Assembly (NCBI GenBank): GCA_009103225.1 | Contig: RHPI01002503.1 | Span: 625,585-689,584, forward strand | Source of the DNA: Chlorokybus atmophyticus | Lineage: Eukaryota > Plantae > Mesostigma and Chlorokybus algae | Length of the DNA: 64,000 bases | Direction of reading: 5' to 3' | Shown: one piece after another, positions 16,294-43,500 of the stretch | How positions within the stretch are numbered: the stretch's first letter is position 1 | Layout of the letters: each line of letters starts with the position of its first letter | Made by a program: the position numbers and the translations under genes | The notes under the pieces: model-generated | Told to the model about the DNA's origin: nothing | The model's input: the letters and a program-made list of their open reading frames with translations, nothing else | Database searches by the model: none

Positions 16294-16295
16294 GC

Positions 16296-16540: not shown

Positions 16541-16865
16541 AGCCCNNNNNNNNNNCCCCCCCCCCCCCCCCCCCCCCTTGAACCTTTGGGGAGGTTTCAG
16601 CAGCTCCAAAGCTCAGTGTTTAACGCAAGTGTGAAGGGTCGTCGGCGCGGCAGTCATTACACCGGTACTCCTCCATGGGTACCGCATCCAGTGGGGGCTC
16701 CAAACAGTAGCAATGCAGGCCCTTGTTGCAGCCATCGCAGAGCATCATGAGCGAGTCGTCATTGGAGCTGCCGCAGCGCTTGCAACGCATGCTGCGGGCG
16801 GGGCGAGGGTGCTTAATGCGCCAGAACCCTGCTATGCAAGGGAGGTGACACGGCGCGCAGTTTAC

Positions 16866-17794
16866 TGTCACAGCCCATTCGACCACAAAAGACTTGGTGC
16901 TTTTATGATCGATTTGTGGTTGTATGTATAATGTACCTTCCCGTTACATCCCCCCCCCCACCCCCCCCCANNNNNNNNNNNNNNNNNNNNNNNNNNNNNN
17001 NNNNNNNNNNNNNNNNNNNNNNNNNNNNNNNNNNNNNNNNNNNNNNNNNNNNNNNNNNNNNNNNNNNNNNNNNNNNNNNNNNNNNNNNNNNNNNNNNNNN
17101 NNNNNNNNNNNNNNNNNNNNNNNNNNNNNNNNNNNNNNNNNNNNNNNNNNNNNNNNNNNNNNNNNNNNNNNNNNNNNNNNNNNNNNNNNNNNNNNNNNNN
17201 NNNNNNNNNNNNNNNNNNNNNNNNNNNNNNNNNNNNNNNNNNNNNNNNNNNNNNNNNNNNNNNNNNNNNNNNNNNNNNNNNNNNNNNNNNNNNNNNNNNN
17301 NNNNNNNNNNNNNNNNNNNNNNNNNNNNNNNNCCCCCCCCCACCCACCCACACACACACACTTACAAACCCTGACATCCTCGGCAGCTGGCTTCCATCAG
17401 CTATGAAATCATCCCAAGGGTTTGCTAGGGTCGGCCATCGGCCCCAACGGCAAGGACCGGCTAAATTGGGCCCATACTGGTCAACTCGCGCATAGCGCAC
17501 CGCTGCCGGCCCTACAGGTCGCATCGCGACAGGCAGGTTTGCGTCTTGCCGCGCCGACTGAACTGGTCAGTCCGATGCGACTGCCATTAGGCAAGTCGCG
17601 ACCTATCAATGATGGCACTTATGACCATTTACGATATTACTTGATCGAGAAACGACCACCGCGGAATTTGTGTGCGAGGCAGGAATCGAACTCGGGTCTC
17701 AAGCTCCGATACCAATGTCACAGCCCACTCGGCCACCAAAGACTTGGTGCTTTTATAGTCGATTTGTGATTATATGATGTACTGTCCCGTTACA
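16866..17794 (-). mobile_element. TRIM copy 1 (terminal-repeat retrotransposon in miniature), inserted in element I integrase
   Basis: LTRs 16866-16948 and 17716-17794 with TG...CA ends; TSD TTTAC at 16861-16865 and 17795-17799; tRNA-iMet-type PBS TGGTATCGGAGC at 17703-17714 (-); poly-G PPT beside an N gap. Confidence 0.9.
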
Positions 17795-20700: not shown

Positions 20701-20854
20701 CCTGCTGCTTGCTCCTCCATATGAGCCACCTCGAGGGCTGTGTGAGCTGCCTTGGTGTCTGCAACGCAATCAGCCCACCCCCCAGCCAGGTGTGCAAGAC
20801 CCTCGAAGGACACATGGCGGTCCTGCAACGCAAAGCTCAACTCTAGCACCAAGA

Positions 20855-21780
20855 CCATGCTGTTTGGGTCCATGGCGCGATTGAGCAGCTGACATTGCTG
20901 ACTATCGGTCAGCGGGGACCATGTGACACTGTTGAGAAAGAACCTCATGGCGCGCTCACGCGCATTGGGTTCTTCCAACTTGCCTGTCGTGGTGTCGAAC
21001 ACCATGCCATCGCCTCCATTGCTGAAGGCATAGGACTCTTGGTAGGACACCAACGTGGGAAGCGCGCGGCGCGGTTGCCCAGGTTGGTTGCATCGGTAGA
21101 AATGGCTGTGATCAAGACGTGTAACAGGTTAAGCTCCAAGGTCGGGGTCGAGGATGTCATCGACCAAAAAGTTGCGGGGCCGTGTACTGCGCGTGTCCTC
21201 TGCTGTTATTGGCTCTTTTGTGGTGGCCAAATTTGTCCACTTGGCGCGGACGCGATGTGCACGGGAACCATGGCACGCTGCGTTCACCTTGAGCGCATGC
21301 CAAAGAACGGAGCACACTTGTTGGTAGGTGGAGGCGACATGAGGACGCTGGTCGTCCTTTGAGTGCACATCTCCGATGACGTACCCTAGTGGCCTGAAGA
21401 TCTGATGCTGTTGGAGGAGGTGGATGACTCTCATCAACTCTCATAACAGACCTGAGCGAGGGTTGTCAAGGCCTTGGCCTTTTCCCGCCCTGAAGTGTCC
21501 TTAGCACTCCAATGCCGAATCAACAAGTTGATGTTACCGAGGGACAGCAAGTGGTCCTCTTTGATTAGGCGGATGCCTTGAGGCTGCCTTACAATGCCGA
21601 CGAGGGCAGTTTCTGTGAATAGCGCTCGTTCAGCTGACGCAAATGGTGCTTAAGGGCTGTTTGAGCGCGCAGGTAAGGGTCGCAATGATCATACTTGGTA
21701 ACTTTGATACATGTATTGAGGACTGCGGCAAAACCACTGTCAATGCCTCTCAACAATTTCAACACCGTGATGCCCTGCTG
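20855..21780 (-). pseudogene. C5 DNA methyltransferase domain of copy I (frameshifted)
   Basis: QQGITVL..GIDSG, W(E)C*GH.RAG, AHRVRAKWTNL, EEPNARERAM.F and QCQLLNRAMD in the same order as in copy II. Confidence 0.8.
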
Positions 21781-23371
21781 CCGTCGAAAGATATGAACTC
21801 CACGACTCCGGTGGCTACCATGTGCTGGTCTTGCACCTTGCCGTGTCCCTTATGGTTATGGAAGCGCGAAGTGATTAGTGTCTAGGTCAGCAACGGGTGC
21901 GTGTCCACCTGTGCGCGCCAACGGCGGTCGGCCGGGTCTTGTAATGCCACCTTAACAGTGGCATCCTCCTGCTCCTCAGTGTAAGGAATGGGAGCGGGGT
22001 CGTGTGTGCGGCAAGGGGCTGCAGTGAAGGCAGCGACTTGTGCGGGCGCTGTCATATGTGGCTGATGCAGCTTCCCGTGTGCGCACATGACTGCATGTGG
22101 CTGTGGCAGCCACTTTGCATGGGCACGCGTGCGTGACACCAACTCGAGAGGCAGGAAGCTCTGTACCTCTCCGTCATCTTCATCCCAATGTGGTTGGAAC
22201 CACTCCTGCTCTGTCCAGCAGTCAAGGCCCATGCCCACGATGAAGTTGAAGTCCTGCCTACGCAAAAAATTGAAGGAGCCAGCTTTGGTGACCACCTATT
22301 GCCGAACGATCTCTGTGGTGTGGGTTGGATCCAGCCTTGTCAGCCGAATGCAGAAGGCCTCTTTGGTGACCCCCATCACCTTGTCACGGCTCCATGTTGC
22401 TATGTCCAATACGTATGGGCAGGGCATCGGGTTCGAGCTGGTGATGACAAGGGATCGCGCGATGAAGCGCCCGATGATGATTAGCTGTGCTCCGTTGTCC
22501 AGCATCACCCGCTTGGGTGCCAGGCCGTTGATGGTCACATGCTTGCCTTGGTTGGCTACCATGGCAGCGTTGGCGTTGATGCGTAGCCTTGGTGCGGGCT
22601 GTTGGCACCGGTGTCTCAGGTCTCTCAACCGAAGGTGCTGAGCGCATCGCAACCACACTCCTCTGCTTGCTACGTCTTGACGACCCCCTCCTTGTCATTT
22701 CCCTCTGCCAAGTTGGCCTTGTCGTGGTGGTTGGTAGACATGGGGAGGCCTTTGCGCTAGGGGTTCTAGTGCTGGCTGCGGTAGAGGTGATGGCGGATGC
22801 CGCCTTTCAGAGGATGAGATCATGCCTGCCGGCGTCCCTCATGGTTGTGGAGGAAAGCCTGGCAGTCCCGGTGTTTGCGGGCCCGCCTCGCGTTCTGCTT
22901 GCTCTGCGGCGTAGGTCCATCGGACAGCATGAGCTGCCTCCCTGACCAAAGTCCCTTCTCATGTGGCTATGGACTCTGTGTCCACATCGGTCCAATGCTG
23001 ATATTATGGCATGAGCTGCAGGTATACCGCGCGCAGTACCTGATGCTGCATGTCGTGAGTGATGGTGGGGACTCGCAAAATTCCTGCCATGTAGGCATCC
23101 CACCTGCCTTGTACCACGCCCACATCGAACACGATCATGGCGCGCGCCCGCATGGAGCGTGGGAAGTCGGTCTGCTGCGCATGTAGCTCATGAGCGATGG
23201 CGATGCGCCGGCGTTGCCATGCTGCTGCTACTCCCGGCAGCCGCAGTATTGCCTCTTGCACTCCCTTCAGAGTGTCTGACGTAGTGGTGGCAGCTTCATC
23301 GTATGCTTGCCGCATCGAGCATACGATCATCGGGCATACCATCGACCAGAGGGGGCAGTAGCGGGGCGATT

Positions 23372-23701
<330 letters not shown>

Positions 23702-26700
23702 NCCCCCCCCCCCCCCCCCCCTCAATTGTTGCGCCAACGCCCTCGCTTAGTCAGCAACAGTTGCTTGCCCTGGCTGTGCGACTGTGGTTTGCGCTGATAG
23801 CACCACGGCAAGAGCAAAGGAGGTGCCGGCGATTTCTGACGGTCCCGCGGGTTGCACTGCAGCGGCGCTTGCTGTTTCACTTGTCGGCACGCATCAACTT
23901 GCGCAGCTTAATCTTACCGATAACGATTAGCCTTTTCAAAAGTGAAAAACCGCTCTGCCACTTCATCTAGGTTTGCTCTCAACTTGCAGTCCGCACTGCG
24001 CTTACAATTTCATGGTAGTTTTTTTGCGCAATGCAAATGCAGCAGAGTGGTACCATTCAATTCATTATATATGGTTTTTCTCTCTTTTTAAACAGCAAGG
24101 TAGACTGTTGATTTACGCATTTACTATCAAATGCGGAGAGATCTTTCAATTTTAAACTAAAAAGTAAACGTTATATCGGGTGGCTGCCACTGCCACTGCC
24201 ACTGCATTCAGGGGATCCAATTTATTTGTGGTAGCATCGGCCGCACTGCGCCTAGTCTGCATCCATTCAGCAACTTAGTTTGCATACCGCATAATTAAAG
24301 GTATCAAAGATCTCCCGTTGCATTGGATGCACCCATTAGAGTCCACAAACAGAGTTGCACTGCTTTACAGGTGACTCCTCTGTGTGAGTCCACGGAGTGC
24401 CATGTCAGCGCTTAACGGCATGTTTGAGGTGGCCACCAAGAGGTCCTGCACTCGGCGATGCTAAAGTCCCAGCGTCAAGGCCTCAAAGTCAATCTGTTGC
24501 GCTGGCATTGGCTGTCGTGATTGGCCGAATGCGTCCTGCAGTCTCGCGTGAAGCGCGAAGAACAATTGTATTGCCAGCTCCAATACAGCAGGACGCCTTG
24601 AAGAGGCAAGCTCTCATTTCAGAAGCAGTGCCAACTAGAATCTCATCTTCCAATTGTTGTTGGGTGGGCTCCAGCAGTGTATGGTATTCGGGCGGTGGTA
24701 GCGGCATGATGCGATCATCTCGCGCTACATGTGCTTGTGCGTTGCCCCCTAGTCCGTACGCAACGGTAACGGGTTCAATGTTGTGTAAGACGGACACCCA
24801 AGCGCGCTCTGCTTGCAGTCCGCATCGCACTTGTTGAATGACATCAGGGTGTGGAGAAGGGGCCGCGCAAACCCCTAATGGTGCGGTGGGAGTGGCAGCA
24901 GGGGCTTACAGAGGTGCGGCAACATCAACTGCATTAACAGTTGTAGCACCTGCAGCAGTCGTGGTGACGGAGGTCGCTGCTATGAGCATTGCAGCAGTTG
25001 TGGCTGGTGCAGTGTTCGCAGCTGTAATACGTGTGGTGCCAACACCACCAGTGGGTTCGCCAGCCATGTCGACAGCAGCCTCAGTGCCGGTCATCTCTGG
25101 CGCCGATGTGGTGTTGGGTGTACCTGCACTGGCAGCACATGTGGGTGTTGTCAACGGGGTCGTCGACGGGGTCGGCCCCGTAAGGGTTGTGGCCGCCGAG
25201 CCAGCCCCACTTGTGGCTTTCGATGATGCCGCTGTTGACGATGCGCCAGCCTCTTTGCGCGCGCGTTTTGATTGGTTGAATACGCGAATGGGGGGGGGGG
25301 GGGGGGGGGGNGGGGGGGGGGTCTTTTTCGCGTTTCGGTGCCATCAAGGCTCGTCGGGCAGCGTGGCAGGTTTGGTAGTTTTGCTCGTTATCTTCTTCCA
25401 GTTGGGCCACTTGAGCCACTCGGGCCGCGATATGGTTGAGAGCTGGTGAACTGACTGATGCTTTAACAGCAGCAGCTCCAACACGAGGGCGTCCCTCGGC
25501 TCCCTTGCGATGTGGAGGGCAGTTCTTCCCTCTGTAGCCAGTCACCTTTTTACGAGCGCCGGCGCCGTTGTTGTGACCACCAACGTTGTTGTTATTGTAG
25601 CCCCCGCTGTTGTTGTTGTTGTTGTTGTTGTTGCTGCTGCTGCTGCTGCTGCAACAGCCACCAGCATTGTTGCTGTTGTTGTAGCCAATAGAGGGCCGCA
25701 GATCGGGGACTTGAGCCAACATATTGCGTCCAAGTGTCCCGTCTTGTGGCAGTAGTCGCACACAAGGTTGCGGTAATCCTCGGGGCACTCCTTTTGGTAG
25801 TGCCCATGTTGACCACACCGATGGCACAGCACTGGAGCAACAAGGGCAGCATAAGCTGACCGTTTGTCCTTGTTGCGCGTGACTGGAGCATCTCGACTGC
25901 GACCTTGTCGAGGGGGCTCAGCACTCGCGCTTGCCATGGGACGTGAGGCGCTTCGGTTGGTGTCCAACACTGCCTTCTCATACAGCGCACGCTTGTGAGT
26001 GGCTTGTGCAGTCTCGAAAGCTTCCTTAAGGGTGTAGCCGAGGGGTCTAATGTAGTTTAGTGTTGAATGCGTCGACTTACTAAAGGTGGAGTCCAACTCC
26101 ACCACGTACACCACTGCAATTACCTCCTCACTGACGGTCTTGTAATCGGTGTCCTTCAATAGTCCTTCCAGCCGCGAATACAGCCGGAAAGGGTCCTCGT
26201 TGGGCTTCCGTCGAAAGCGTCTCAACACCTTTACCTTGTTGGTGGTCTGGGGCGGGAAGGTACGCCGCAGTGCCACGTACAAGTCCTTGAGAAGAGAGTC
26301 CGACATGATAGCACCCATGGTGATGGCTGGTGCGTGCAATGCCACCGAACCAAGTTTGAAAAGGCTGCCTCCTGCCGGAGTATGCGAGCCCGGTGTTGGT
26401 GGTAACAGTGTTCATGTTTTTAAGGCTGCAGCTTGTTGTTCAGCTTGCTGAGCCTCAATGATGGCAGCGGTGCGGTTAAGGACTCTGGTCCGTCGGTCAG
26501 CCTTCTTGACCTCGACCTCTGCAGGTGTTAGAGAGGCAACAACCAGCTCAGCTTTCTTATCCTCTGCCCATTGTATAGATGCGGCTAACGCCCGTCCAGT
26601 GATTGGGGTTGGAGGGACCACTGCTGCTGAGGCAGAAGCTGCTAGGCTATACGTTGGTGCAAGTGCTATGGTGGCCAGCTCGCCAAAGCCATCAACTTCG

Positions 26701-27199
26701 TGCAGCTCAGCAATGGACTTTGACACATCGTGTGCCTCATGATCAAGGTACCGAGCCATGATATGGAATGACACCTCATCTGACCAGTCCTTGTTCTTGC
26801 TGCCGCATTTTTGAGTGGAACTTGATGATGAACTCATCAAGTGGTGTGGTGCCCGCACGTCGGAGGTTGGTTGAGCTGGAAGGCTCCATTTCTTTGTCGT
26901 CACTGTTCGAAAGAGGTGGGGAGGCTTGATGGTGAGGAGTAAAGTGGAAGGAGGTGAAGCCGGAGAAGGGGCGAGAGCTCCTGCTGCTACGGTAACTGCG
27001 TCCTTCACTTGCTCATTTGTAGGTGAGGTTGGAGGTTGGGCTCTAGCTGCTGAGGTCCCCCTCATCTATTGGTGAAAATGGGGTGGGCCTGCTTATGCAG
27101 CTGATGCGATAGTGAAAGTGTATGAAGGGTAGAGTGTTTGTGCTCTACAAGGCTATCTCAATGCTGCTAACACTCAACACACTAATGATTATGCGCACC

Positions 27200-27339
27200 G
27201 GTCGTCGGCGCTGCCACAGCGCGTGCTGCGGGCGGGGTGAGGGTGCTTGATACGCCCAAAGCCAGCTATGTAAGGGAGGTGACATGGCGCGCAGCTCACC
27301 ATGTTGTCCTTCAACCTCTTGCCGTCCTAGCCAAGAAGG
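27200..27339 (-). mobile_element. Displaced integrase C-terminal fragment of copy III (left flank of the copy II insertion)
   Basis: Sequence continues directly into 37593 onward once one AAGG is removed, rebuilding CCAAGAAGGTCC (homologous to CCAAGGAGGTCC in copy II's own integrase). Confidence 0.8.
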
Positions 27340-27654
27340 TGTCGGGTCGAGGGGAGTCGAGGGTCACGCTGTCTCGGACAGCTGCATCGACAGCCATGCT
27401 TGCTGGACATGCTGCTGCGCCACCTGTGTAACGCGCAGCAAAAACAAAAGATGACCCCAACCCTTATGGTGACAAGTGCTTTGTGCAGCTAGTCTGCTGC
27501 TGCTGGGTAGTACGGGCAGGTGGAGTCGGTGTTCGCCCTAGTGTACATGCTGTGCTGTAGCACACAAAGCCAAAAAGCCACCCCCCCGGGCTCTGGGGGA
27601 GGTTCTAGCTCCAAAGCTCAGCTGCTAGCGCAAGTGAGGAGGGCCGTTGGTACG

Positions 27655-27789
27655 GCAATCGTCGCACCAATACTCCTCCATAGGTATCGCGTCTAAAGGT
27701 GGCTCCAGGCAGTAGCAATGCAGGCCCTTGTTGCAGCCATCGCAGAGCATCATGAGTGCGTCGTTGGCGGCGCTGCCACAGCGTTCACA
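27655..27789 (-). CDS. PHD finger (C4HC3) at the integrase C-terminus
   Basis: CERCGSAANDALMMLCDGCNKGLHCYCLEPPLDAIPMEEYWCDDC; nearly identical in copy I. Confidence 0.92.
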
Positions 27790-28900
27790 GCGTGTGCTGC
27801 GCGCGGGACGAGGGTGCTGCATACGCCCGAAGCCGGCTACGCAAGGAAGGTGACATGGCGCACGATTCACCATGTTGTCCTTCAACCTCTCTCCGTTTTG
27901 ACCAAGGAGGTCCAGCACCCCTGTGGGGTACACTTTGAGTACCTTGTAGACGGTGCGACCTACGGAGGTGTCAAGTGTGTCTTTGGTGGCTGCCATGCGA
28001 TAGGCAAAGTCCCCCGCTTGGAACCGCCGTTGGCGCTCCTTGTAGAAGCCGCTGCGTACGCGCTCGTAGCGCAGCGTGTCGCGATGCTGCGCAATGCGCA
28101 GGTTGTTGAAGGCCATGGGGACGGTGCGCTCGAAAAACGCGGCGCGCGTGGTGATGTCGTGGTGCATCTAGTCAGGGTCGTCGAGGTTGTTCACAACGCG
28201 ATCCACCTCCTGCTGCGCACGGAAGGGGAGCAATGGTGGTCGCCCGAACAGCAGGTAGTACGGGCTGTACTCCCGCAGAGCCGCCTGCTTTGACAATCGA
28301 TATCCGAGGGCCACCCACGGGAGGTGGTCATCCCAAGTGTTCTTCTCGTACTCCAGCACGTACTTGCGGAGTGCCTTTTTGATGGTCTGCACTGTACGCT
28401 CGGCGAGACCGTCGGCTGGAGGGTGATCACGCGAGGTACGGCGGTGGTCGATGTAACATCTGTCCAAGAGGGTGTCAAATTCCCCTCTGAACTCAGTACC
28501 TTGGTCAGTGATGACCTCGGCACAGCTGCCAAATCGGCTGAGAACGTGAGAGAGGAAGGCTTGAGACACCCCCCTGCTGCTCTTGTCGGGTATCGGTACC
28601 AGCTCCACCCATTTGGAGAAGTGCTCGATCATGCCCAGGATGTAACGGTTGCCACTCGCTGAGGGTGCCAAGTCCCCCAAGATGTCGAGCCCGCATTGGT
28701 AAAAGAGACCGGAGATGGGGAGTGGGTGTAAGGTGGCGCTACGCGTGTTGAGGCTGGCGCGCACCATGTCACACTGCTGGCAGTGGCTGACGAACCCTTG
28801 CACCTGTTTTGTTAAACCATACCACCAATATTGTGCCCTCACTAGGCTGATTGTACGCTTGACACCGAAGTGTTCAAGCTCAGTGTGGAGGGAAGTGATG
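27790..28900 (-). CDS. Retroviral-type DDE integrase with N-terminal HHCC zinc finger
   Basis: HTELEHFG...CQQC; GLDILGD, ITDQGTEF, GLAERTVQTIKKAL; YSPYYLLFGRPP; a frameshift separates the core from the C-terminal/PHD part. Confidence 0.92.
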
Positions 28901-29346
28901 ATGCCCTCGCGCGTGACCGGTGTCGGCACTTCCTTGTCTTCGTCGTGGAAGCGGCGATACAGCTTGTCACCTGCCCATCGATAGTGACGGGTGCGTTGGT
29001 TGACTCGGTCCTTCTCTTGGGCGCTCATGCCGGAGGGAAGCTGGCCACTGAAGAAAGGAGAGTGATGGCTTGTCCTGCCATATGTCCTGCCTGGTGTCAG
29101 TGGGCGCCAGCTCTGTGTTATCGATGTCAATGTCGGCTACGTGGGCGTCTCCCAAGGGTGTGGTTGCCGCAGGGCCGGTAGGCTCAAGGGCAGGAATTTC
29201 CTCTGCCACTGCTGAGGCTGTGGTGTTGGTCTTGCGCCCTGAGCGCAACGCGACAGCAGCAAACATGGCTGCCATGGTGGGGGCTGTTGCTGCAGGGACG
29301 AGCTCATGCCGAGCTCCAGTTGCATCGTTGGTGCTGAGGTGAGGGT

Positions 29347-30610
29347 GCGACTGAGGCCATCGGCGTCTTGGTTGGTGTTGCCAGCGCGGTGGTCGATCTC
29401 GAAGTCGTACTCCTGCAACAGCACGGCCCATCGAGCAAGTTTCCCTGTCAGATGTTGGTTGGTCATCAGCCACTTGAGGGGCTGATGGTCGGTGATTAGT
29501 TGGAACTGTCGATCAAAGAGGAAAGGTCGGAAGAAGAAGATGGCCCACACTGCAGCGAGGCACTCCCCTTCGTAGCTGCTGTAGTTGGCCTCGGCGCTGT
29601 TGTTGCTTCGGCTGGCGTATGACACCACCCGCTCCTTTTTGTTCTCATCGTGCGGAACCAGCACCGCTCCCCTCCCCAGCTTGCTCCAGTCGGTGTGAAG
29701 GATGAAAGGCTTGGCGTAGTCCGGACGTTGAAGGATGGGAGCGGTGGTGAGCCTACTCTTCAGCTCCTCGAAGGCCTGCTTTTGCGGCTCCTTCCATGCG
29801 AACTCCACCTCCTTCTTCAGTAGCTCGTTGAGGGGCCTTGCGATCTTCGCGAAGTCCTTCACGAACCGGCGATAGTAGTTGGCAAATCCCAAGAAAGCGC
29901 GCAGCCGTGTGAGGTCTGTCGGGGCGGGGATAGCTGCCAGAGCCTCTACTTTTGCCTGCTGCACATACACACCGTGGGGCACAATCATGTGCCCTACGTA
30001 CGGCACCTTGTGGGTGAAGAAGGTACACTTGTCGAGGTGTACAATCATCCCCACTCCCTTGAGTCGTTCCAGCACCGCTTCGATATGCTAAAGATGCTCC
30101 TCGTTGCTGCGGCTGAAGATGAGGATGTCATCAATGTAGCACCGCGCGTAGTCCAGCCCCTTCAAGGCCTTGTCCATGACGCGTTGAAACCTGGCGGGGG
30201 CATTCTTCAGCCCGAACGGCATTACCTTCCATTAGTACAACTGTCGGTTGCCCCAGAAGGAGGTCTTGTGCTTGTCCTCGTCCTTGATGGCGATTTGGTT
30301 GTACCTTTGACGCATGTCCAGGATGCTGAAGACTGTGCAGTTTCCCACATCATTAAAGATACCCTCTGCTGTGGGCATGAGGTACCGGTCTTGCTTAGTC
30401 TTGTTGTTGAGGGGGCGGATAGTCGCCACACATGCGTCGCTCTGTCCAGTTGCCTGCTGAATCCTTCTTCAGTGGCATGACGGTTGCTGCTGCGAAGTCC
30501 GATGTGGACTCTTCAATAAGGTCTGCATCAAGCAGCGCCTTACATCTCTGTTCCACCAGGTCCTCTTCCACCTTGGAGAGCCTGTATTGCCGCCGGAACA
30601 CCGGCTCAGT
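29347..30610 (-). pseudogene. Ty3/gypsy reverse transcriptase plus RNase H (with frameshift and stops)
   Basis: [56 protein letters not shown]; RNase H FILHTDWS, EGECLAAVWA, TDHQPL, DADGLSR. Confidence 0.93.
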
Positions 30611-30939
30611 GTCCACCAGCTCGATGTCCATCTGGTACACTGAGCATGTACCCAATTCCTTCACATTGCAGCTGAATTGGCTCCATTTGAGGAGAGCCTC
30701 CAGCTTCTCTCGAGTGTCTTCTGTGGCCAACGGACCAATGGCATGGTCCCAGGAGGTTGCATTGGCAACCACGGGAATGTCCTCCACTGTCGCTGCTGCT
30801 TGCTCCTCCATGTGGACCACCTCAAGGGCTGTGTGAGCTGCCTTGGTGTCGGCTACGCGATCAGCCCACCCCCTAGCCAAGTGTTCGAGATCCTCGAAGG
30901 ACACGTGGCGGTCCTGTAATGCGAAGCTCAGCTCCAGCA

Positions 30940-31883
30940 GCCATACCATGCTGGTCTGGTCCATGGCGCGGCCAAGCAGCTGGCATTGCTGACTATCTGT
31001 CAGCGATGAACCCGTGATGCTGTTGGAAGAATCCCACGGCGCGTTCACGTTCGCGTGCGTTGGGTTCCTCCAGCTTGTTGGTGGTCGCATCAAACACCAT
31101 CCCTTGTCCACCGTTCCGGAATGCGTAGGAGCCCGGGTAGGACACCAATGTGGGGAGTGCGCGACGGGGCTGACCGGGCTGATTGCACGGGTAGAAGTGG
31201 TTGTGGTTATGACGGAGGACACGTTGTGCTTTGCGGCCGGGGTCAAGGATGTCATCGACCAGCAGGTTGCGCGGCCGAGCGCTGCGCGTGTATTCTGCGG
31301 TCATGAGTTCCTCCACGGCGGCTAGGTTTGTCCATTTGGCACGTATACGATGTGCGCGCAAGCCATGTCGTGCAGCGTTCACCTTGAGCGGGTGCCCCAG
31401 AATGGAGCAAACTTGTCGGTAGCTGGAGGCCACGTGCGGACGCTTGTCGTCCTAAAAATGCACATTTTCGATGACGTACCCCAGAGGTCTGGAGATCTGG
31501 TGGTGTAGAAGGAGGTGGATGATTCTCATTAGCTCCCAAAACAGCCCTGAGCGAGGGTGTTCGAGGCCTTGCCCCTTGCCTGCCCTGGTGTGCCCTTGGC
31601 ATTCCCACCCAGCTATTAATAGGTCGACGTTGTCGAGGGACAGTAGGTGATCTTCGGTGATCAGCCGGATGTCTTGTGGCAATGCTTTGAGGCTGCCTTG
31701 CAACGCCGTGAGGGGTAGTTGATGTGAATACCTTTCGTGCAGTTGGCGCAAGTGGTGCTTGAGGACCGTTTGCGCGTGTGGGTCTGGGTCGCAGTAATAG
31801 TATTTAACAATCTACACACCCGTGTTGAGGACCGCGGCAAGACCGCTGTCAATGCCTCCAAACAGCTCCAACACTGTGATGCC
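30940..31883 (-). pseudogene. C5 cytosine DNA methyltransferase domain (DNMT3-like) inside pol of copy II
   Basis: Motif I VLELFGGIDSG; II YYYCD; III QDIRLI; IV DLLIAGWECQGHTRAG; V PRSGLFWE; VI YVIENV; VIII AHRIRAKWTNL; IX EPNARERERAVGF; X QLLGRAMD. Three in-frame TAGs (two upstream, at least one a Gln codon in copies I/III) and one frameshift. Confidence 0.88.
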
Positions 31884-32289
31884 CTATTGCCTGCGAAAGG
31901 TGTGGAACTTCATCACTCCGGTGGCCACCATATGGTGGTCCTGCACATTGTTGTGGCTTCGGTAGTTGGGGAAGCGCATGGTGATCAGTGGATGGCTGAG
32001 CAAGACATGTGCGTCCACCTGTGCGCGCCAGCGCCGTTCAGCTGGGTCTTGCAATGCTACTTCCACGGTGGCATCCTCCTGCTCCTCGTTGTACGGGGTT
32101 GGAGAGGAGTTAACGGTTCGACACGGGGCAGTGGCATTAGCAGCGACTTGCGTCCGAGCGCCGTCGTATGTGGCCGTTGCAGCCTCCCGTGTGCGGGCGT
32201 GGCTGCGTGTGGCCACGGCAGCCACTTTGCGTTGGTCGCGCGTGCGCGAGACCAACTCGAGAGGCAGGAAACCCTGCACCTCTCCGTCA

Positions 32290-32660
32290 TCCTTATCCAA
32301 ATGTGGCCGAAACCACGCCTGCTCTGTCCAGCAGTCGAGGCCCACAGGGAAGTTGAAGTCCTGCCCAAGCAGAAAGTCGAAGGAGCTGGCAATGGTGATT
32401 ATACATTGCTGGACGATCTCGGTTGTGTGGGTGGGGTCCAGCCCTGTCAACCGAATGCAAAAGGTCTCCCTGGTGACTCCCATCACCTTATCTCGGCTAC
32501 CTGTGGCAGTGTCCAACACGTATGGGCAAGGCACCAAGTCAGAGCTGATTATGCCTAGGGACCGCGCGAGGAAGCGCCCGATGATGACAGGCTGTGCTCC
32601 GGTGTTCAACATCACTCGCTTGGGTGCCAGGCCGTTAATGGTAACGTGCTTGCCTTGATT
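32290..32660 (-). CDS. Retropepsin-type aspartic protease
   Basis: VTINGLAPKRVMLNTGAQPVII (copy I has VMLDNGA) ... FDFLLGQDF, matching the D[ST]GA and ILG.D motifs. Confidence 0.8.
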
Positions 32661-33117
32661 GGCCACCATGGCAGCATTTGCGTTGATGCGCAGCCTCTTC
32701 ATACGAGCTATCTGCACCTCTGTCTCAGTTCGCTCAGCTGGGGGTGCTGAGCGCATGGCAGCCAGAGCTCCTCTGCCTGCTTGGTCTGGAGAACCCCCTC
32801 TTTGCCCTCTCCCTCTGCCGAACCGACCTTGTCGTGGTGGTTGGTAGACACGGGGGGGGCTCGGTGCTGGAGGTTCCGGCGCTGGTTGTGGTGGCGGCGC
32901 AGGTGGATGCCGCCTCTGCGAAGATGGAATCATGCCCGCAGGTGTACCCAATGGCTGTGGAGGAAAAAAACCCCGGCGGACCCGGTGTTTGCGGGCCTGC
33001 CTCGCGTTCAGCTTGCTCTGCGGCGTACGTCCATCGGACCGCATGAGCCGCTTCTCTGACCAACGTCCCTTCCCATGTGGCCGTGGGCTCGGTGTCCATG
33101 TCGGTCCAGTGATGATA

Positions 33118-36100
33118 TTAAGGCATGGGCTGCAGATATACGGCGTAGTAGCTGTCGCCGCATGTCGTGGGTGATGGTGGGGACGCGCAAGATCCCTGTC
33201 ATGTAGGCATCCCACCTTCCTTGTACCACTCCCACATCGAGCACGGTCATGGCGCGCGCGCGTAGGGTGCGCTGGAGGTCAGTCTGCTGTGCGTGTAGCT
33301 CATGAGCAATGGCGATGCGCCGCCGTTGTCGTGCGGCTTCCACCCCTGGCAGTCGCAGCATTGCCTCTTGCACTCCCTCCAGCGTGTCCGGGGCTGTGGT
33401 GGCAGCCTCGTCGTATGCTTGTCGCAGCGAACGGACGAATGCCCCCAACCATGATGCTCGGTTGCCAAAGGCAAACAGGGGGACAGCAGGGTGATTGGCA
33501 ACGAGCCATGTCACGAGACGGGCTCGAGCGGCGTTGCCCTCTCGCATCCCCATCATCTGTCTTAATGTGTTGCCCTCAGGCCTGTGCAACATGACTGCTT
33601 GACGAATGATTGCGGTACGGAGTTGTTGCTCCCCCACCATACCAGCTCCTCCTCGTTGTGTGGTGTCCCCTTGCGGGGTGAGGTACCCTCGCCCTGCATC
33701 GCGTTGATCCTCAGGCATGTCTTCAACCAAAGGAGGCAGCAGCGGGGCGATTACCCCCCTCAATTGTTGCGCCAACGCCCTCGCTTGGTCTGCAACAGTT
33801 GCTTGTCGTGGCTGTTCGATGGCGACTGTCGTGGAGTACCCTGTGGTCAGCGCCGTGGAGGCGCTGGCAACATTTGCCGGAGCTACGGTTGGTACGATAA
33901 CGGCGTGTGCTGCTGCGTACGCATGTGGGCGCGCGTCCACTTGGGCAGCTTGGTCCACCTGATAACGATGTGCCTGTTCGAGGGCAGAGAAACACTCTTG
34001 ACGACTGCCTGGAGTGAGCCCCCGGAGAGCGGGATCAGCGCCCAGCGCGATGTCTGACATGGTGACCACGAGGTCTTGTATTTTGTGGCGCTTCAGTCCG
34101 AGTGGGTCCAGTGGCGAGGGCTCGAAGTCGATCTGTTGAGCCGGCATGGGTTGCCGCGTTTGACTGGGTGCGCCGTGCAATCGTGCGTGTAATGCCAAGA
34201 ACAATTGAATGGTCAGCTCTAATACTGCAGGTCGCCGGTAGGTGACCCCGAAGAGACGATCCCTCATCTCTGGTGCAGTGCCGGCGAGGATTTCATCCTC
34301 CAGCTGCTGTTGTGTGAGTTCCGGCAGCGTGTGGTACTCTGGAGGTGGTAGGGGCAAGATGCGATCATCGCGTGCCACGCGCGTGGTGCGTTGCCCCCCT
34401 GGTCCGTACGCAATGGTGGTGGGCTCCACGTTGCGTACAATCGACGCCCAGGCGTGTTCAGCTTGTGGTCCGCGTGGCACTTGCTGTGTGACGTTAAGCG
34501 CTGGTGGCGGTGCCGTTCGAATCTCTGGAAGTGGTGCAGTGGGTGCGGCAGCGCTACTGGAGGCGATGATGGTGGCACCTGCAGCAGTCGTCGTTACTGA
34601 GGTGGCGGCTGTGAGGGTGGCAGCAGTTGCGGCTGATGTGGTCGCTTCAATGGAGGCAGGAGTGGTGGATTCACCACCCACGAACCCAACGACCATGGTT
34701 GATGCGGCGTGGGTGCTTTCCATCACCGGGGACAGTGTGGTGTCAAGAGTGCTGACACCTGCTGTCGTGGTCGGTGTGGACGCCGACGGTGTCGTCGATG
34801 GCGTCGTTCCAGCTGTGGTTGTGGCTGCCGAGGCAGCACCACTTGTGGCGTCCGACGATGCCGCTGTTGACGACGCGCTAGCTTCCCTGCGCGCACGTCT
34901 TGATGGTTGTACGCGTGACGGCGTGGGAATGTCCCTATCCCGTTTTGGTGCCATCAGCGCCCACCTAGCAGCATAGCAGGCTTGATAGTCCTGCTCCTTG
35001 TTCTCCTCCAGCTGTGCCACGCGCGCCATCAGGGCTGTCACTTGGTCAATAGCTGGTGAATTGGCTGGTGCCTTTACAGCAGCAGCTCCAGCGCGAGAAC
35101 GTCCCTCCGATCCTTTGTGTGTTGTGGAGGGCGGTTTTTCCCTCTGTAGCCAGCTTCTTCCTTGCGGGCCCCAGCGTTGTTGTTGTTGTTGGGGTTGTGA
35201 CCACCAGCGTTGTTGCCATTGTTGCGACCACCAGCGTTGTTGCTGTTGTTGTAGCCGCCAACGTGGTTGCTGTTGTTGTAACCCCCGTTGTTGTTGTTGT
35301 TGTTGTTGTTGCCGCGGTAGCCAACAGCATTGTTGCCGTTGTTGTAGCCAATAGAGGGCCGCAGCTCAGGAAACTTAAGCCAGCATACTGTCTCCAAGTG
35401 TCCCGTCTTGTGGCAGTAGTCGCACACAAGGTTGCCGTAATCTTCGGTGCACTCCTTTTGGCAGTGGCCATGTCGACCACACCGGTGGCACAGCACTGGA
35501 GCTTCAAGGGCAGCATGAGCTGACCGTTTATCCTTGTTGTGGATGCCTTGCGGCTCTCGGCTGCGGTCTCGCCAAAGAGGCTCTGCACTTGTGCCTGCCA
35601 TAGGCCGTGAGGCACTGCGGTTGGTGTCCAGCATCGCTTTCTCATACACTGCGCGCTTATGGATGGCTTGTGCAGTCTCGAAAGCTTGAGGGTGTAGCCG
35701 AGGGGCCTGCTGTAGTTCAGCGTCAGGCGCGTTGACTCACTCAGGGTGGGATCCAACTCGGCCACATACACCACTGCTGCCGCCTCCTCGCTGACGATCT
35801 TGTAATCAGTGTCTTTAAGCAACCCTTCTAACCGTGAATACAGTCGGAGAGGGTCCTCGTTGGGCTTCCGTCGAAAACGCCTCAACTCCTCCACCTTGCT
35901 GTTGATTTGAGGTGGGAAGGTGCGCCGCAGTGCGGCGTAGAGGTCCTTCAACGGGGAGTCCGACATGGCCGCGCCCACCGTAAGCGCGGGTGCACGCAAT
36001 GCCACTGAGCCGAGGGTGAAAACACTGCCTCCCGCTGGAGCACGCGAGTTCGGTGTTGGTAGCAGGGGCGTACCCATCTCCAACGCTGCAGCTTGCTGCT

Positions 36101-36776
36101 CCTCTTGTTGCTCCCTGATGATGGCAGCGGTGCGGTTGAGTATCCTGATCCGGCGCGCGGCCTTCTTGCTTTCGATCTCTGCAGGAGTCAATGAGGCCAC
36201 TACCACCTCAACTTCTTCATTCTTTGCCTTCTCCATGGCTGCAGCGGAAGTGAGACCCGTGACTGAGGCTGGCGGGGCCGCTGCTACAGGGACAGTAACC
36301 GATGGGCTATGCAGTGACGTGGAGGATATTGTGCTAGCCAATTCGCCATAGCCATCAATCTTGTGCAACTCAGCAACGGACCACACATCATGTGCTTCGT
36401 AATCAAGGCATTGAGCGGACACATGAGACGATACCTCATCTGTCCAGTCCTTGCTTTTGAGGGCTTGCTGTCGCATCTTGGAGTAGAACTTGATGATGAA
36501 CTCGTCAAGTGAGGTGGTGCCAGGGCGTCCGGAGAAGCGTAGGGAGTTGGTTGAGCTGGAAGGCTTCATCTCCTCGTCGTCACTGTCCGACGATGGTGGA
36601 GATGCTCGTTGTCGAGGAGTGGAGTGAGAGGAGGTGAAGCCGGAGACGGTGCTTGAGCCTCTGCTGCTACGGTAATCGCTCCCCTCACTTGCGCGCTCGT
36701 AGGTAAGGTTGGAGGTCGGGCTCCAGCTGTTGAGGTTCCCTTCTTCTATTGGCGAGAAAGGGGTGGGCCTGCTCAT
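33118..36776 (-). pseudogene. ORF1: Gag (capsid-like region, two CCHC knuckles, Asn-rich tract) plus ~650-aa unknown extension
   Basis: RFSGRPGTTSLDEFIIKF; FRRKPNEDPLRLYSRL; CHRCGRHGHCQKEC and CDYCHKTGHLETVC. Comparison with copies I and III shows the frameshifts are copy-specific, implying one original ORF ending YLQ.MP*. Confidence 0.8.
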
Positions 36777-36975
36777 ACAGCTGATGCGATGGTGAAAGTG
36801 GATGAAGGGTAGAGTGTTTGTGCTCTACAATGGGATCTCCAATGCTGCTATCACCCAACACACTAGCGCTTGTGCGCGCTATGCGATGACGGTGACAACG
36901 ATGCACTGCGATGTGTACAACTATAGATTGCGATGCTGATGTGCAGCCTGCAACTACACTCACTTGAGCAAAGAG

Positions 36976-37282
36976 GGTGACACTGTAAGTCAACAAGCCA
37001 CTACTATAGGTAGCGCTGTTTACACAGTTCTTTGCATGAGTGGAAGAGAAATTACACTGTTAAGTAAGGTGAATGAGCAAGCAACACGTGGATGCTATGC
37101 CCTGACTGATGCCAACAAGCACCCCGCGACCAAGTACACCAAGCTCACAACAAGGACAAGCACAGTGCACAAGAACATGCACAGGCTGTTACACGGTGAG
37201 GGGATTCTGGGGAACCGGGACGCCGTGTTTTGTAGTTCAAGTCGCTTCACAAGCTATTAGCTTTCTCACTTACAGTGTCACC
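36976..37282. repeat. Perfect 15-bp inverted repeat in the element leader (candidate self-priming PBS)
   Basis: GGTGACACTGTAAGT at 36976-36990 and ACTTACAGTGTCACC at 37268-37282. Confidence 0.8.
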
Positions 37283-37592
37283 AGCTGATCCGGTGAACAC
37301 TGTGCCTACTTATACAAGTCAACTCATGACTGTCCAGAACATAAGCTAACGGTCATATCGAGGCTATTTCCACAGGAAATCCCCACTCGATATAGAACCC
37401 AACTTATAACTGAACTCACAACTGAACAGCTACGCGCGGTGCCTATGTAGGCTATGGTCATGAGCTACTCTAGAGACATGACCTAGCTACTGGTCAGTGA
37501 CGCGCGCGGGTCGCCATGCTGGTAAGCCGGGCGAGGGTCTCGCTGTAGGCATGCCCGATGACGACTGGCTTGCCCGGGCGATAGGCATGACA

Positions 37593-40500
37593 AAGGTCCA
37601 ATATCCTTGTGGGGTACACCTTGAGTACCTTGTGGACAGCGTGGCCAACGGAGGTGTCAAGCGTGTCTTTGGTGGCCTCTATGCGGTAGGCATAGTCCCG
37701 TGCTTGGAACAAAATTTTGCATTCCTTGTAGAAGCCACTGCGCACATGCTCGTAGCGCAGCGTGCCGCGGTGTTGCGCGATGCGCAAGTTGTTGAAGGCC
37801 ATGGGAACGGTGTGCTCGAGCAGTGCCGCGCATGTGGTGATGTCATAGTGCATTTAGTCGGGTCGTCAAGGTTGTTCACCACGCGATCCACCTCCTGGTG
37901 TGCATGGAAGGGAAGCAGCGGTGGGCGGCCGAATATCAAGTAGTACGGGCTGTATTCGCGCAGAGCCGCCTGCTTCGACATTCGGTACTTGAAAAAAATA
38001 AAAACGAAAACAATTTCCCGTGGGTGAAGGGCCATCCACGGGACGTAATCATCCTAGGTATCCTTCTCATACTCCAACACAAACTTGTGGAGTGCTTTTT
38101 TGATGATCTGCACCGTGCGCTCGGCGAGACTGTTGGCCTGAAGGTGGTCATGCGAGGTGTGATGATCAATGTAGCACCTGTCCAAGAGAGTGTCGAACTC
38201 TCCTCTGAACCCGGTGCCTTGGTTGATGACCTCAGCACAGCTGCCGAACCGGCTGAGGACGTGAGAGAGGAAGGCTTGAGATACCCCCCTACTGCTCTTG
38301 TCGGGCAGTAGCACCAGCTCCACCCACTTGGAGAAGTACTCGATCATCACAACGATGCAACGGTTGCCGCGTGCTAAGGGTGACAAGTCTCCTCAAGTGT
38401 CAAGCCCCCATCGATAGCAAAGGCCGGAGATGGGAAGAGGGTGTAATGTGGCGCTGCGCGTGTTAAGGCTGGTGCGCACCACGTCATTGTTGACAGTGAC
38501 TTACGAAATCCTGCACCTGCTTGTACAACCTATGCCACCAATATTGTGCTCGTACCAGGCTGACTGTCCGCCTGACACCAAAGTGTCCCAACTCAATGTG
38601 GAGCGCAGCAGTGATGCCCTCGCGTGCGGCTGGTGTCTGTACATCTTTGTCTTCGCCATGAAGACGACGATACAGTTTGTCATCCGCCCACCCGGAATGC
38701 TTAACGCGGTCCTTTTGGCGCGCACTCATGCCATCGGGAAGTTGGCCACTCTGAAGAAAGGACAGGGTTGGCTTGTCCAACCATATGTCTTGCCTGAAAT
38801 CGGTGGGTGGAGTGTCTTCTGCATTTGCTGCATTTGCTGACTGAAGAGCAAGCAGCTTCGCCGCGGCGGCTGTCGCAGCTGTGTTGAATTTTGCGCCCTA
38901 TGCGTAGCGCGGCGGCAGCAAACATGGCAGCTATTGTAGGGGCTGCAGCTGTAGGGCTGAGCTTATGTCGAGCTCCGGTTGCGTCGTTGATGCAGAGGTG
39001 GGGGTTACGGCTAAGCCCATCGGCGGCGTCGTTGGTGAGGCCAGCGCAATGGTCGATCTTAAAGTCGTATACCTATAGCAACAATGCGCAGCGGGCAAGT
39101 TTGCCTACTAAGTGATGGTTGGTCATCAACCACTTGAGGGGCTGATAATCAGTGATTAATTGCAACTGCCAATTGAAGAGAAAGAGCCGAAAGAAGGAGA
39201 TAGCCCACACCGCACACTTGCCCTCATAACTATCGTTGGCCTCGGCGCAGTTGTTGCTCCTGCGGGCGTACGACACCACTCGCTCCTTCTTATTCTCATC
39301 GTGCGTGTACCAGCACGGCTCCCATCTCGAAATCCGTGTAGCGTAGAGGATGAAGGGGTCGGTGTAGTTCGAGCGCTGGAGGATGGGAGCAGTGGTGAGC
39401 CTGCTCTTCAGCGCCTCAAAGGCCTGCTACTGTGGCTCTTACGAACTCTACCTCCTTCTTTAGTAGCTCATCGAGGGGCCGTGCGATCTTAGCGAAGTCC
39501 TTCACACCGTCGATAGTAATTGGCAAGGCCAAGAAAAAAAGGCGCGCAGCTGCGCGAGGTCTGTGGGGGCCGCGATCGCTGCTAAGGCCTCCACCTTTGC
39601 CTGCTGTACACACCATGTGGCACGGTCATGTGCCCTACGTACGGCACTTTGTGGGTGAAAAAGGTGCACTTATCGAAATGCACAGTCATCCCTACTCCCT
39701 TGAGTTCAGCCCAGCGCCGCCTCAATGTGCTGGAGGTGTTTTTCTTTGCTGCGGCTGAATTGAGGATATCGTCGATGCAGCACCGCGCGCGGTCCAACCC
39801 TTTCAAGGCTTTGTTTATGATGTGCTGAAACTTGACGGGGGCGTTCTTTAGCCCGAACGGCATCACCTTCCGCTAGAAAACTTGTCGGTTGCCACACATG
39901 AAAAGAGGTTTTCTGTTTGTCCTCGTTTTCAATGGCAATTTGGTTGTACGCTTGACGCATATCAAAAATGATAAAAATTGTGCAATCTCCCACATTGTCA
40001 AAGTTACCCTTTGCTGTAGGCATGGGTAACATGTCTTGCTAAGTTTTGTTGTTGAGGGGGCAATAGTCACCACACAAATGCCGTCCTGTTGCCCTGAATC
40101 CTTTTTTGGTGGCATGACAGTCGCGGCTGCAAAATCCGGTGTTGACTCCTTAATGAGGCCTGCATCGAGCAGGGCCTTGTATCTCTGCTCCACCAGGTCT
40201 TCTACCAACCAGGAGAGCCTAAATTGCCGCCGGAACACATTGGCTCCTCTACTTGTTGAGGAGAGCCTCCAACTTCTCTCGCGTCTCTCCTCCGTGGTAA
40301 GAGGGCCGATAGCGTGGTCTCATGACGTTGCGTTGGCAACCGCGGGAATGTCTTCCACTGTTACCGCTGCTTGCTCCTCCATGTGAGCTACCTCGAGGGC
40401 TGTGTGAGCTGCTTGGTGTCTAAAACGCGATCAGCTCACCCCCAAGCCAGGTGGTCGAGATCTTTGAAAGACACATGGCGATCTTGCAATGCAAAGTTGA

Positions 40501-43500
40501 GCTCTAGCACCCAGACCATGCTGTTCTGGTATATGGCGCGGCCAAGCAGCTGACACTGATGATTGTCGGTCAAGTGTGATCCTGTGATGCTATTGGGAAA
40601 AAAGCCTATGGCGCGTTCGCGTTCGTGTGCGTTGGGTTCTTTCAGCTTGCCAATGGCCTCGTCGAATACCATGCCTTTCCCGCCATTGCGGAAGGCATAA
40701 GAGCCTAGATAAGACACCAATGTGAGAAGTGCTCGGCGTGGTTGTCCCGATTGGTTGCACGGGTAGAAGTGGTTGTGATTGTGATGCGTGACATGATGGG
40801 CCTTGCGGCCAGGGTCAAAGATGACATTGACAAATATTTGGTCTCTACCGCTATGTCTGTCGCCTCCATCTTTAACGGCCTGCGCGCCAGCAAGGTGCAG
40901 CAGAAGACCAAGGCTGTGGCTCGTCGGGTCGGTTGGTCGGTCATAGCGGTCGGTCGGTCCGCGGCCGCGTGCTGTGCGTGTATTCTGCGGTTATAGCTCC
41001 TCTGTGGTGGCCAAGTTTGTCCACTTGGCGCGTACGCAATGTGCACGTGAACCGTGTCATGCTGCGTTCACCTTGAGTGGGTGCTCAAGAATGGACCACA
41101 CCTGCCGGTAGCTGGAGGCCGCATGAAGACGCTGGTCGTCTTTCGAGTGGACATTCTCGATATTATACCCAGTGGCCTGGACATTTGGTGCTGCTAGAGG
41201 AGATGTATGATTCTCATCAACTGCTAAAACAGTTCTAAGCGAGGGGTTTCATTGCCTTGGCCTTTTCCAACTCTGGCTGCTTTGACGTGCCCTTGGCACT
41301 CCCATTTAGTTATCACCAAGTCGATGTTGCCGAGGGACAGAAAATGGTCTTCGTTGATCAGTCAAATGTCTGGAGGCAATGCCTTAAATAAAGCTGCCTT
41401 AGCAATGCCGAAAGGGGCAGGTGCTGTGAATACGTTCGTGCGACTGCCGTAGGTGGTGTTTGAGGGCTGTTTGCGCGTGTGGGGCGCGGTCACAATAGTA
41501 GTATTTGGTGATCGTGACTCCTGTTTTTAGGACAGCGGGAAGACCACTGCCAATGCCTCCAATCAACTCCAACACGGTGATGCCCTGTTGCCGCCGGAAG
41601 GTGTGGAAGTCCACCACCCGGGTGGCCACCATATGTTGATCTTGCAACTTGCCCTTGCTGCTGTAACCGTGGAAGCGTGAGGTGACAAATGGCTGTGTCA
41701 GCAGAAGGTGTGCATCCACTTGTGCCCGCCAACGGCTTCACTTTCACTTCAGCCGGATCTTGAAATGCCACCTCATCGGTGGCATCCTCCTGCTTTTCAT
41801 TGTAAGGAATGGGAGCGGAGTCATTGGTGCGAAAAGGGGCTGCTGCAACGGCAGCGACTCTGTCGCGAGCGATGTCGTACGTGGCTGATGCAGCCTCTTG
41901 TGTGCGCACATGGTTATCTATGGCTACGGCAGCTAGCTTGCGTTGAACTCCCGTGTGTGGCATCAACTCGAGAGGCAGGAAAGCCTGTACCTCTCCGTCA
42001 TCCTCTTCCCAATGTGGCCGGAATCAAGCTTGCTCTGTCCAGCAGTCGAGGTCCATGCCCACAGGGAAGTTGAAGGCCTGCCTTAGCAAAAACCGAAGGA
42101 ACCGGCATTGGTGACCACACACTGCTGTGTGATCTCGATGGTGTGTTTGGGGTCCAGCTATATCAACCGAATGTAGGCCTCATTGGTGACCCCCATCACC
42201 TTGTTGCGGTTGCCCGTCGCCGTGTTCAGCACATATGAGCAGGGCATCAAGTCCAAGCTGGTGATGCCAAGGGGACACGCGAGGGAGCGCCCGATGATGC
42301 CAGGCTGTGCTCTGGTGTTCAACATCACCCGCTTAGGTGCCAAGCCATTAATCGTCACATGTTTACCAGCATTGGCGTTGATGCGCAGCCTCTTTTTGCG
42401 GGCTGCTGGCATCGGTGCCTCATGTCTCTCAGTTGAGGGTGTTGAGCGCATGGCAGCCAAAGCTCCTCTGCCTGCTGAGTCTTGAGGACTCCCCCCTTCA
42501 CCTCTTAACCTGCCAAACCTACCTTGCCGTGGTGGTAGGTAGTCGCAAGGAGGTCTTTAAGTTGGAGGTTCTGGTGCTAGCTGTGGTGGAGGGTGCCGCC
42601 TTTGCGAGGAGGGGATCATGCCTGCTGGTGTCCCCAGCGGCTGCGGCGGGAAGCCTGGTGGGCCTGATGTTTGTGGGCCTGCCTCGCGCTAGGCTTGCTC
42701 TGTAGCATAGATTCATCGGACAGCGTGGGCGGCCGCTCTGACCAATGTCCCCTCCGACGTGGCCGTGGGCTCCGTATCTATCGGTCCAAGGGAATCAGGG
42801 CATGAGCTGCAAATACACTGCGCGTAGTAATTGTCGCCGCATGCCGTGGGTGATGGTGGACACCCGAAAGATCCTTGCCATGTAGGCATCCCACCTTCCT
42901 TGTATCATTCCCACATCTAGCACCGCCATGGCGCGTGCCCGTATGATGCGTTGGAGGGTTATAGGTTCGTCTGCTGCGCGTGTAGCTCATAAGCGATGGC
43001 GATGCGCCAATGTTGTCGTGCTGTTTCTACTCGTGGCAGTCGCAGCATTGCCTCTTGCACCCATTCAGGGTGTCTGGAGCAGTGGTGGCAGCTTCATTGT
43101 ATGCTTGTCGCAACAAGCGAACGAATGCTCCCAATCATGATGCCGAAGGCAAACATGAGGACAACGGGATGATTGGCGACGAGCCACGTCGCTTATCATG
43201 CTCGGGTTGCGCTGCCCTCTCGCATCCCCATCGTCTGTCTTAATGCTCTGCCCTCGGGTCTGTGTAGCATGGCTCCTTGTCGCATGAGGGCGATACGGAG
43301 TTGTTGCTCTCCTACCATGGCTCCTCCTCTCTTTGTGGTGTCCCCTTGTGGGGTGAGGTAGCCTCGCCCTGCATCACGCTGATCATCAGACATATCCTCA
43401 ACCAAGGAAGGCAATAGCGGGGCGATTACCCCCTCAATTGTTGCGCCAACGCCCTCGCTTGGTCAGCTGCAGTTGCTTGCCCGTGCGGAGCGTCTATGGT

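Follow-up and report, generated by a model that had tools for sequence, protein, structure and literature searches.

Retrotransposons that carry a DNA methyltransferase (DNMT) of the DNMT3 type have been in print since 2018 (PMC5890265). In Klebsormidium nitens, KnitGypsy-Dnmt3 is a Gypsy element whose Pol ORF includes an intronless, Dnmt3-related DNMT (de Mendoza et al. 2018, PMC5890265). Its repeats follow the DIRS-like order A-coding-B-A-B, the DNMT has a Ka/Ks < 0.2, and motif X is poorly conserved (PMC5890265). In yeast, no methylation was detected for this DNMT, which the authors regarded as inconclusive; CG methylation in yeast was obtained with DNMT3 domains of DIRS-type elements (PMC5890265). 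In a preprint of 2026, "streptophytes (Gypsy-DNMT3)" is treated as established (bioRxiv 10.64898/2026.05.21.726589).

The window analysed here is a 64,000-nucleotide stretch from Chlorokybus, a streptophyte (charophyte) alga. It contains three minus-strand elements of Ty3/Gypsy type (copies A, B and C; Table 1), arranged head to tail with a period of approximately 10 kb and sharing 74-80% nucleotide identity. The encoded order per element is gag, protease (PR), DNMT3-type cytosine-5 DNA methyltransferase, reverse transcriptase (RT), RNase H, DDE integrase and PHD finger. With high confidence, the three copies are regarded as dead members of the streptophyte-algal Gypsy-DNMT3 retrotransposon lineage, each with one Gag-Pol polyprotein, and this membership is based on common features instead of a joint tree with Klebsormidium.

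KnitGypsy-Dnmt3 and the window elements have in common a DNMT3-related, unrearranged and intronless DNMT inside a Gypsy Pol ORF, a charophyte host, the A-coding-B-A-B layout with Gypsy domain content, low Ka/Ks and a weak motif X. From these defining features we infer that the window elements are of the KnitGypsy-Dnmt3 type. They differ in host (Klebsormidium versus Chlorokybus), in that the window copies are dead, and in the PHD finger, which is present in the window elements and unmentioned in the 2018 text (PMC5890265). The domain order of KnitGypsy-Dnmt3 is given in a figure only and is absent from the supplement (PMC5890265); the likeness described here concerns the features listed above. 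A literature search for 'Chlamyvir' together with PHD, a lead on PHD-bearing algal Gypsy clades, returned nothing usable. With Chlorokybus, a second or third streptophyte algal class is added to the hosts of DNMT-carrying Gypsy elements, which is of use for the study of how transposons handle host DNA methylation.

SymbioDIRS-Dnmt3 of Symbiodinium resembles the window elements in its DNMT3-type domain in Pol and its A..B-A-B repeats. However, it is a DIRS element with a tyrosine recombinase, whereas the window elements have a DDE integrase (rve) and a 4-bp target duplication. A DIRS identity, which would imply a tyrosine recombinase and no target-site duplication, was ruled out by Integrase_H2C2 and rve, TG..CA ends and the 4-bp duplication.

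Table 1. Positions of the elements, their repeats and their coding domains in the window.
Feature	Position	Strand	Details
Copy A	16588-27198	(-)	without 5' A repeat; assembly gaps 16546-16555, 16971-17332
Copy B	27340-37592	(-)	whole element, 10,253 bp, inside copy C
Copy C, 5' part	37593-47705	(-)	A repeat, gag, PR, DNMT, RT, RNase H, integrase
Copy C, PHD-coding region resumed 3' of nested copy B	27215-27339	(-)	
Target-site duplication CCTT, 5' side of copy B	37593-37596	(-)	
Target-site duplication CCTT, 3' side of copy B	27336-27339	(-)	
5' A repeat, copy B	36988-37592	(-)	~600 bp, starts TGTCATGCC; again at 47108-47705, 15262-16300
5' A repeat, copy C	47108-47705	(-)	
3' tail B1-A2-B2 after copy A	15027-16543	(-)	DIRS-like B-A-B end: B1 16309-16543, A2 15262-16300, B2 15027-15272
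Gag-like region, copy B	33008-36776	(-)	upstream of PR; ORFs 35046-36776 and 33008-35041, both without Pfam match
Aspartic protease, copy B	32127-32699	(-)	Pfam Asp_protease_2 E 1.9e-5; tblastn to P0174 residues 644-829
DNMT3-like C5 cytosine methyltransferase pseudogene, copy B	30890-31883	(-)	PF00145, P0174 alignment, family HMM
RT and RNase H, copy B	29347-30417	(-)	RT_RNaseH E 1.1e-34; 55% identity to P0174 residues 1453-1809; two in-frame stops
DDE integrase (H2C2 zinc finger and rve core), copy B	28168-29130	(-)	Pfam Integrase_H2C2 E 1.7e-14, rve E 3.4e-7
Integrase C-terminal extension with terminal PHD finger, copy B	27625-28167	(-)	Pfam PHD E 5.9e-9
DNMT remnant, copy A	20688-21774 (approx.)	(-)	family HMM; ENV changed, catalytic-loop Gln codon changed to stop, further stops
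DNMT remnant, copy C	40490-41584 (approx.)	(-)	several frame changes and stops; ~120 bp insert in target-recognition part

Copy B was aligned by tblastn with an intact 2358-aa relative (P0174). Residues 644-2350 of this protein run colinear with 32699-27637, with frame changes of copy B near 31028 and 30418. All Gypsy domains (PR, RT, RNase H and DDE integrase) and the DNMT are colinear on one strand. The protease-bearing ORF spans 31884-33215 and the RNase H-bearing ORF 29137-30075; Pfam matches were absent from nine further ORFs of the window. In the gag region, CCHC-type zinc knuckles were found at 35074-35649 in a frame that differs from that of the long ORF 35046-36776, which indicates a frameshift in the gag of copy B. 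A sequence-only reading of this DNA had proposed a Ty3/Gypsy-type element in which a methyltransferase is paired with an integrase PHD finger. Both parts were borne out by the PR, RNase H and H2C2-rve integrase on neighbouring ORFs and by the PHD match of copy B.

In copy B, Pfam PF00145 was matched with an E-value of 3.7e-10 on a 99-aa piece (31452-31751, minus strand), and 31883-31029 is 48% identical to P0174 residues 949-1238 (tblastn). With a 146-aa piece (30993-31433) as query, the number of matched representative proteins was 536 at E<=1e-3 and 290 at E<=1e-10, and polyproteins of more than 2000 aa are frequent among them. At the position of the stop codon 31884-31886 on the PR/DNMT border of copy B, copies A and C read Gln; PR and DNMT thus once formed one reading frame. 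The DNMT domains of 28 of the matched proteins were aligned (alignment A1), and the family HMM and profile were derived from this alignment. The window remnants were scored as read-through with an X at each break. Copies B, A and C obtained 421, 292 and 272 bits and kept 39, 28 and 31 of 44 invariant or near-invariant residues, respectively. Among the invariant positions of the alignment are the catalytic Cys, E-N (motif VI), AHRxR (motif VIII), ERE..G and LG..D; copy B retains FGG (motif I), the catalytic Cys, ENV (VI), HRxR (VIII), ERERAxG and LGRxMD.

The type of the domain was determined with the family profile and with a structural model. Against the PDB, the profile of the 28 relatives matched DNMT3A at 2.4e-24, DNMT3B/C at ~1e-22, DRM at 1e-14, M.HhaI at 6e-8 and DNMT2 at 3e-6. 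Profile and DNMT3A align colinearly from motif I through X. The AlphaFold model of P0174:943-1319 (mean pLDDT 90.3) gave a Foldseek top 50 against the PDB that consists of DNMT3A/B/C throughout, with a target-normalised TM of ~0.84; this structural match was computed on the nearest intact relative and not on the window copies. As single queries against the PDB, two window pieces gave a weak M.HhaI match (E 0.0015) or none, so the designation 'DNMT3-like' rests on family profile and fold. The domain is a DNMT3-like, unrearranged C5 methyltransferase, colinear and in frame with Pol. This is what the sequence-only reading had described: a C5 methyltransferase of DNMT3 type with motifs I to X in canonical order, lying between protease and RT in all three copies and in frame apart from copy-specific lesions. 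The HMM scores, the colinearity on P0174, the border Gln codon and the PF00145, profile and Foldseek matches agree with it, and its coordinates lie close to those computed here (Table 1). A secondary insertion into a single copy is not the case, as the domain is in three of three copies.

The catalytic domains of human and mouse DNMT3A/3B/3C are the best profile and structure matches of the window family and, like it, have motifs ordered I-X and a short region for target recognition. However, identity is ~22%, and the window domain is without PWWP or ADD and embedded in a retrotransposon polyprotein. The window family has additional loops, with 334 columns aligned against a target of 285 residues, and its motif IV reads E-C-Q in the window versus P-C-N in mammalian DNMT3. 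In copy B it is at ~31595-31603, where the catalytic Pro-Cys motif has Glu for Pro. Glu before the catalytic Cys occurs in 113 of 202 family members, the window copies included, and P-C-Q in 62 of 202. Motif X is divergent in the family. Plant DRM has a DNMT3-related catalytic core as well, but its motifs are circularly rearranged (VI-X before I-V), whereas those of the window and the family keep the order of DNMT3A. DRM was aligned only to profile positions 5-139, and this first half of the family profile corresponds to the C-terminal part of DRM. A DRM identity was ruled out by the motif order.

An intact DNMT is present in none of the three copies. The DNMT of copy B is interrupted by stops at 31884-86 (PR/DNMT border), 31812-14 and 31452-54 and by a frameshift near 31024-31028; a few further lesions lie in RT and integrase. 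Stops and frame changes are far more numerous in copies A and C than in copy B. An open frame with intact catalytic motifs was found in none of the three; copy B has Cys, ENV and RxR, yet is interrupted. Given stops and frameshifts in all three copies, no activity can be claimed for the window copies. All three decayed after the insertion of copy B into copy C. Polarised single-copy changes of C>T/G>A versus T>C/A>G numbered 249 versus 127 in copy A, 302 versus 130 in copy C and 155 versus 139 in copy B, and the near-absence of an excess in copy B fits with its being the youngest copy. The excess in copies A and C (positions 17794-23318 and 37551-43112) is mostly outside CpG. CpG observed/expected was 0.72-0.81 in the copies and 0.60-0.77 in the flanks; depletion is no stronger than in the flanks, and thus nothing specific to the copies.

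In one run (X3; kind unstated, other organism label), hundreds of short contigs were 95-99% like copy B. Some of them differ from copy B by insertions or deletions of 1-2 letters at 31024, 30417, 29345 and 29048, of which the first two coincide with frame changes of copy B and the last two lie at the edges of adjoining tblastn matches. Since these contigs differ at the breaks of copy B, close relatives of copy B that are free of them probably exist. In runs guessed to be RNA, one 198-nt contig was placed on copy B, which neither supports nor opposes transcription.

The copies were compared by codon position. Differences between copies amount to 34-37% at third positions and 10-18% at first and second positions. 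For the DNMT, dN/dS of the three copy pairs was 0.11, 0.13 and 0.24; it was 0.12-0.15 for RT-RNase H and 0.15-0.27 for integrase-PHD. The third-position bias and the low dN/dS show that the copies diverged while they were active elements. During the divergence of these three sublineages the DNMT was constrained as strongly as RT, which indicates that it served the element and was not a passenger.

In an active element, the DNMT would be translated as part of Pol and either freed by the protease or still attached to RT. It would then methylate the element's new DNA copy or the insertion site de novo, and the resulting methylation state would favour persistence of the new copy, as proposed in 2018 (PMC5890265). 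The PHD finger of the integrase may choose the chromatin. We put this scheme forward tentatively, at slightly below an even chance. Caution is due because KnitGypsy-Dnmt3 gave no signal in yeast, a result its authors regarded as inconclusive, and because most members including the window copies have Glu for the Pro of the catalytic motif.

The same Glu and the silence of KnitGypsy-Dnmt3 in yeast (PMC5890265), together with a motif X that is degenerate both in the family alignment and in the supplement of PMC5890265, would also fit a family domain that does not methylate DNA and acts as a structural or RNA-directed module, or as a SAM-binding decoy with another role in the particle. This is unlikely, since 28 distant relatives show little or no variation in the catalytic Cys, ENV, RxR and the SAM-binding FxGxG, the fold matches DNA-bound DNMT3A/B, purifying selection is strong, and DIRS-type DNMT3 domains do methylate CG in yeast (PMC5890265).

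Domain order was located with probes cut from P0174 among 288 fetched proteins. More than 150 polyproteins elsewhere carry the DNMT domain. Word-based protein searches returned many polyproteins, and no Klebsormidium protein and no host DNMT3 were among the results. Two Pol layouts were found: PR-DNMT-RT-RNase H-integrase(-PHD) (type I) and RT-RNase H-DNMT-integrase-PHD (type II). An unrooted DNMT tree of 90 sequences splits exactly into type I and type II (SH-aLRT 99); the same split was obtained in an unrooted RT-RNase H tree (SH-aLRT 90) and in an unrooted DNMT tree of 202 sequences. The window is of type I, and so are all named Closterium proteins (several species, four strains). Named chlorophyte proteins (Monoraphidium, Haematococcus, Cymbomonas, Chlamydomonas eustigma and Chromochloris) are of type II or on the type II side. 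The relatives from Monoraphidium, Haematococcus, Cymbomonas and Chlamydomonas eustigma have a homologous DNMT (35-45% identity), RT, integrase and PHD in common with the window. However, their DNMT follows RNase H instead of preceding RT, and they lie across the deepest split of the DNMT and RT trees.

The sequence-only reading had further suggested an additional or independent DNMT acquisition in a chlorophyte. This part was not supported: Chlorokybus is a streptophyte, a charophyte Gypsy-DNMT3 has been in print since 2018, and the window lies inside a lineage with Closterium. A previously unseen capture by a chlorophyte Gypsy element is very improbable, even though Chlorokybus is not named in the searched literature on DNMT-carrying retrotransposons and DNMT identity to the nearest database relatives reaches only ~50-55%. 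In the trees of DNMT and of RT-RNase H alike, the window falls within one lineage that shares PR-DNMT-RT with Closterium, the idiosyncratic motifs E/P-C-Q, AHRxRxxWTN and ERERAMG are common to the family, and the A..B-A-B layout is already published for a charophyte element.

Rather than a Klebsormidium oddity, Gypsy-DNMT3 may be an old retrotransposon lineage spread over the green lineage, with PR-DNMT-RT in streptophyte algae (this genome and Closterium), RT-RNase H-DNMT-integrase in chlorophytes, a DNMT that moved within Pol once, and selection as on RT. We consider this about as tentative as the methylation scheme. As the trees are unrooted and most sequences are metagenomic and unnamed, the split between streptophytes and chlorophytes is to be read as a lead. 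If true, Chlorokybus, which is among the earliest streptophyte branches, would date the partnership of Gypsy and DNMT3 to the base of Streptophyta or earlier.

At the locus of P0174 (L001:1-16272), an 8262-bp unit is repeated head to tail with 99.9% identity, and the contig has a name with the ending '_c'. Possible explanations are a tandem array, a circular or concatemeric form and an artefact of the assembly.

Copy B begins with TGTCATGCC and ends with ..GACCCGACA, i.e. its termini are 5'-TG..CA-3', and it interrupts copy C in the PHD-coding region. After removal of copy B and one CCTT, copy C matches the homologous coding stretch of copy B gapless and in frame. TG..CA ends, the 4-bp CCTT duplication and the restored frame identify copy B as a nested DDE-type insertion in copy C. 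The element integrates via a DDE-type reaction, and from this clean nesting it is seen that integration of these permuted-repeat elements yields TG..CA ends and a 4-bp duplication in the fashion of a DDE integrase. Copy A adjoins the remnant of copy C at 27198-27215. Copies A, B and C are separate insertions. That one insertion, with a DNMT that had entered once locally, was duplicated in place with its segment would suit three head-to-tail copies on one strand with a ~10 kb period, but this is ruled out for practical purposes by third-position divergence and dN/dS of 0.1-0.3 in every domain, by the discrete insertion of copy B in copy C with its own target-site duplication, and by the polyproteins elsewhere that carry the DNMT domain.

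Regarding the repeats of these separately inserted copies, no copy is flanked by paired equal LTRs, and a canonical LTR retrotransposon was therefore ruled out. The termini are formed by repeats A and B, which differ from each other. B1 and B2 of the tail following copy A are 81% alike, and A2 is ~82% alike to the A repeats of copies B and C. Copy B ends in A..B only and is without the B-A-B tail; recombination between B1 and B2 would explain such ends. A G-run resembling a polypurine tract lies directly before the B repeat in copies A and B (16546-16590 and 27560-27585), and the motif GGCTTGTTGAC closes the A repeat and recurs just ahead of the B repeat. The G-run and GGCTTGTTGAC are possible candidates for priming or cutting signals. 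Copy A has an extra segment (16866-17795) that resembles, in inverted orientation, a segment of the gag region of copy C (45163-45663). It spans a gap of 362 N (16971-17332) between 84-bp direct repeats, and part of it may be an assembly artefact.

Two direct repeats of 288 bp, 100% identical and 6.1 kb apart, are located at 52314-52601 and 58411-58698. Between them lie ORFs that reach 631 aa and are without Pfam match, and 0.8 of the words of this stretch occur in two runs guessed to be RNA. The stretch may be a young LTR-type element or an assembly effect (single N at 58699). Also outside the elements, a 72-bp tandem duplicate (96%) is found at 2300-2450 and an inverted 83-bp copy (98%) at 3023-3105, 650 bp away.
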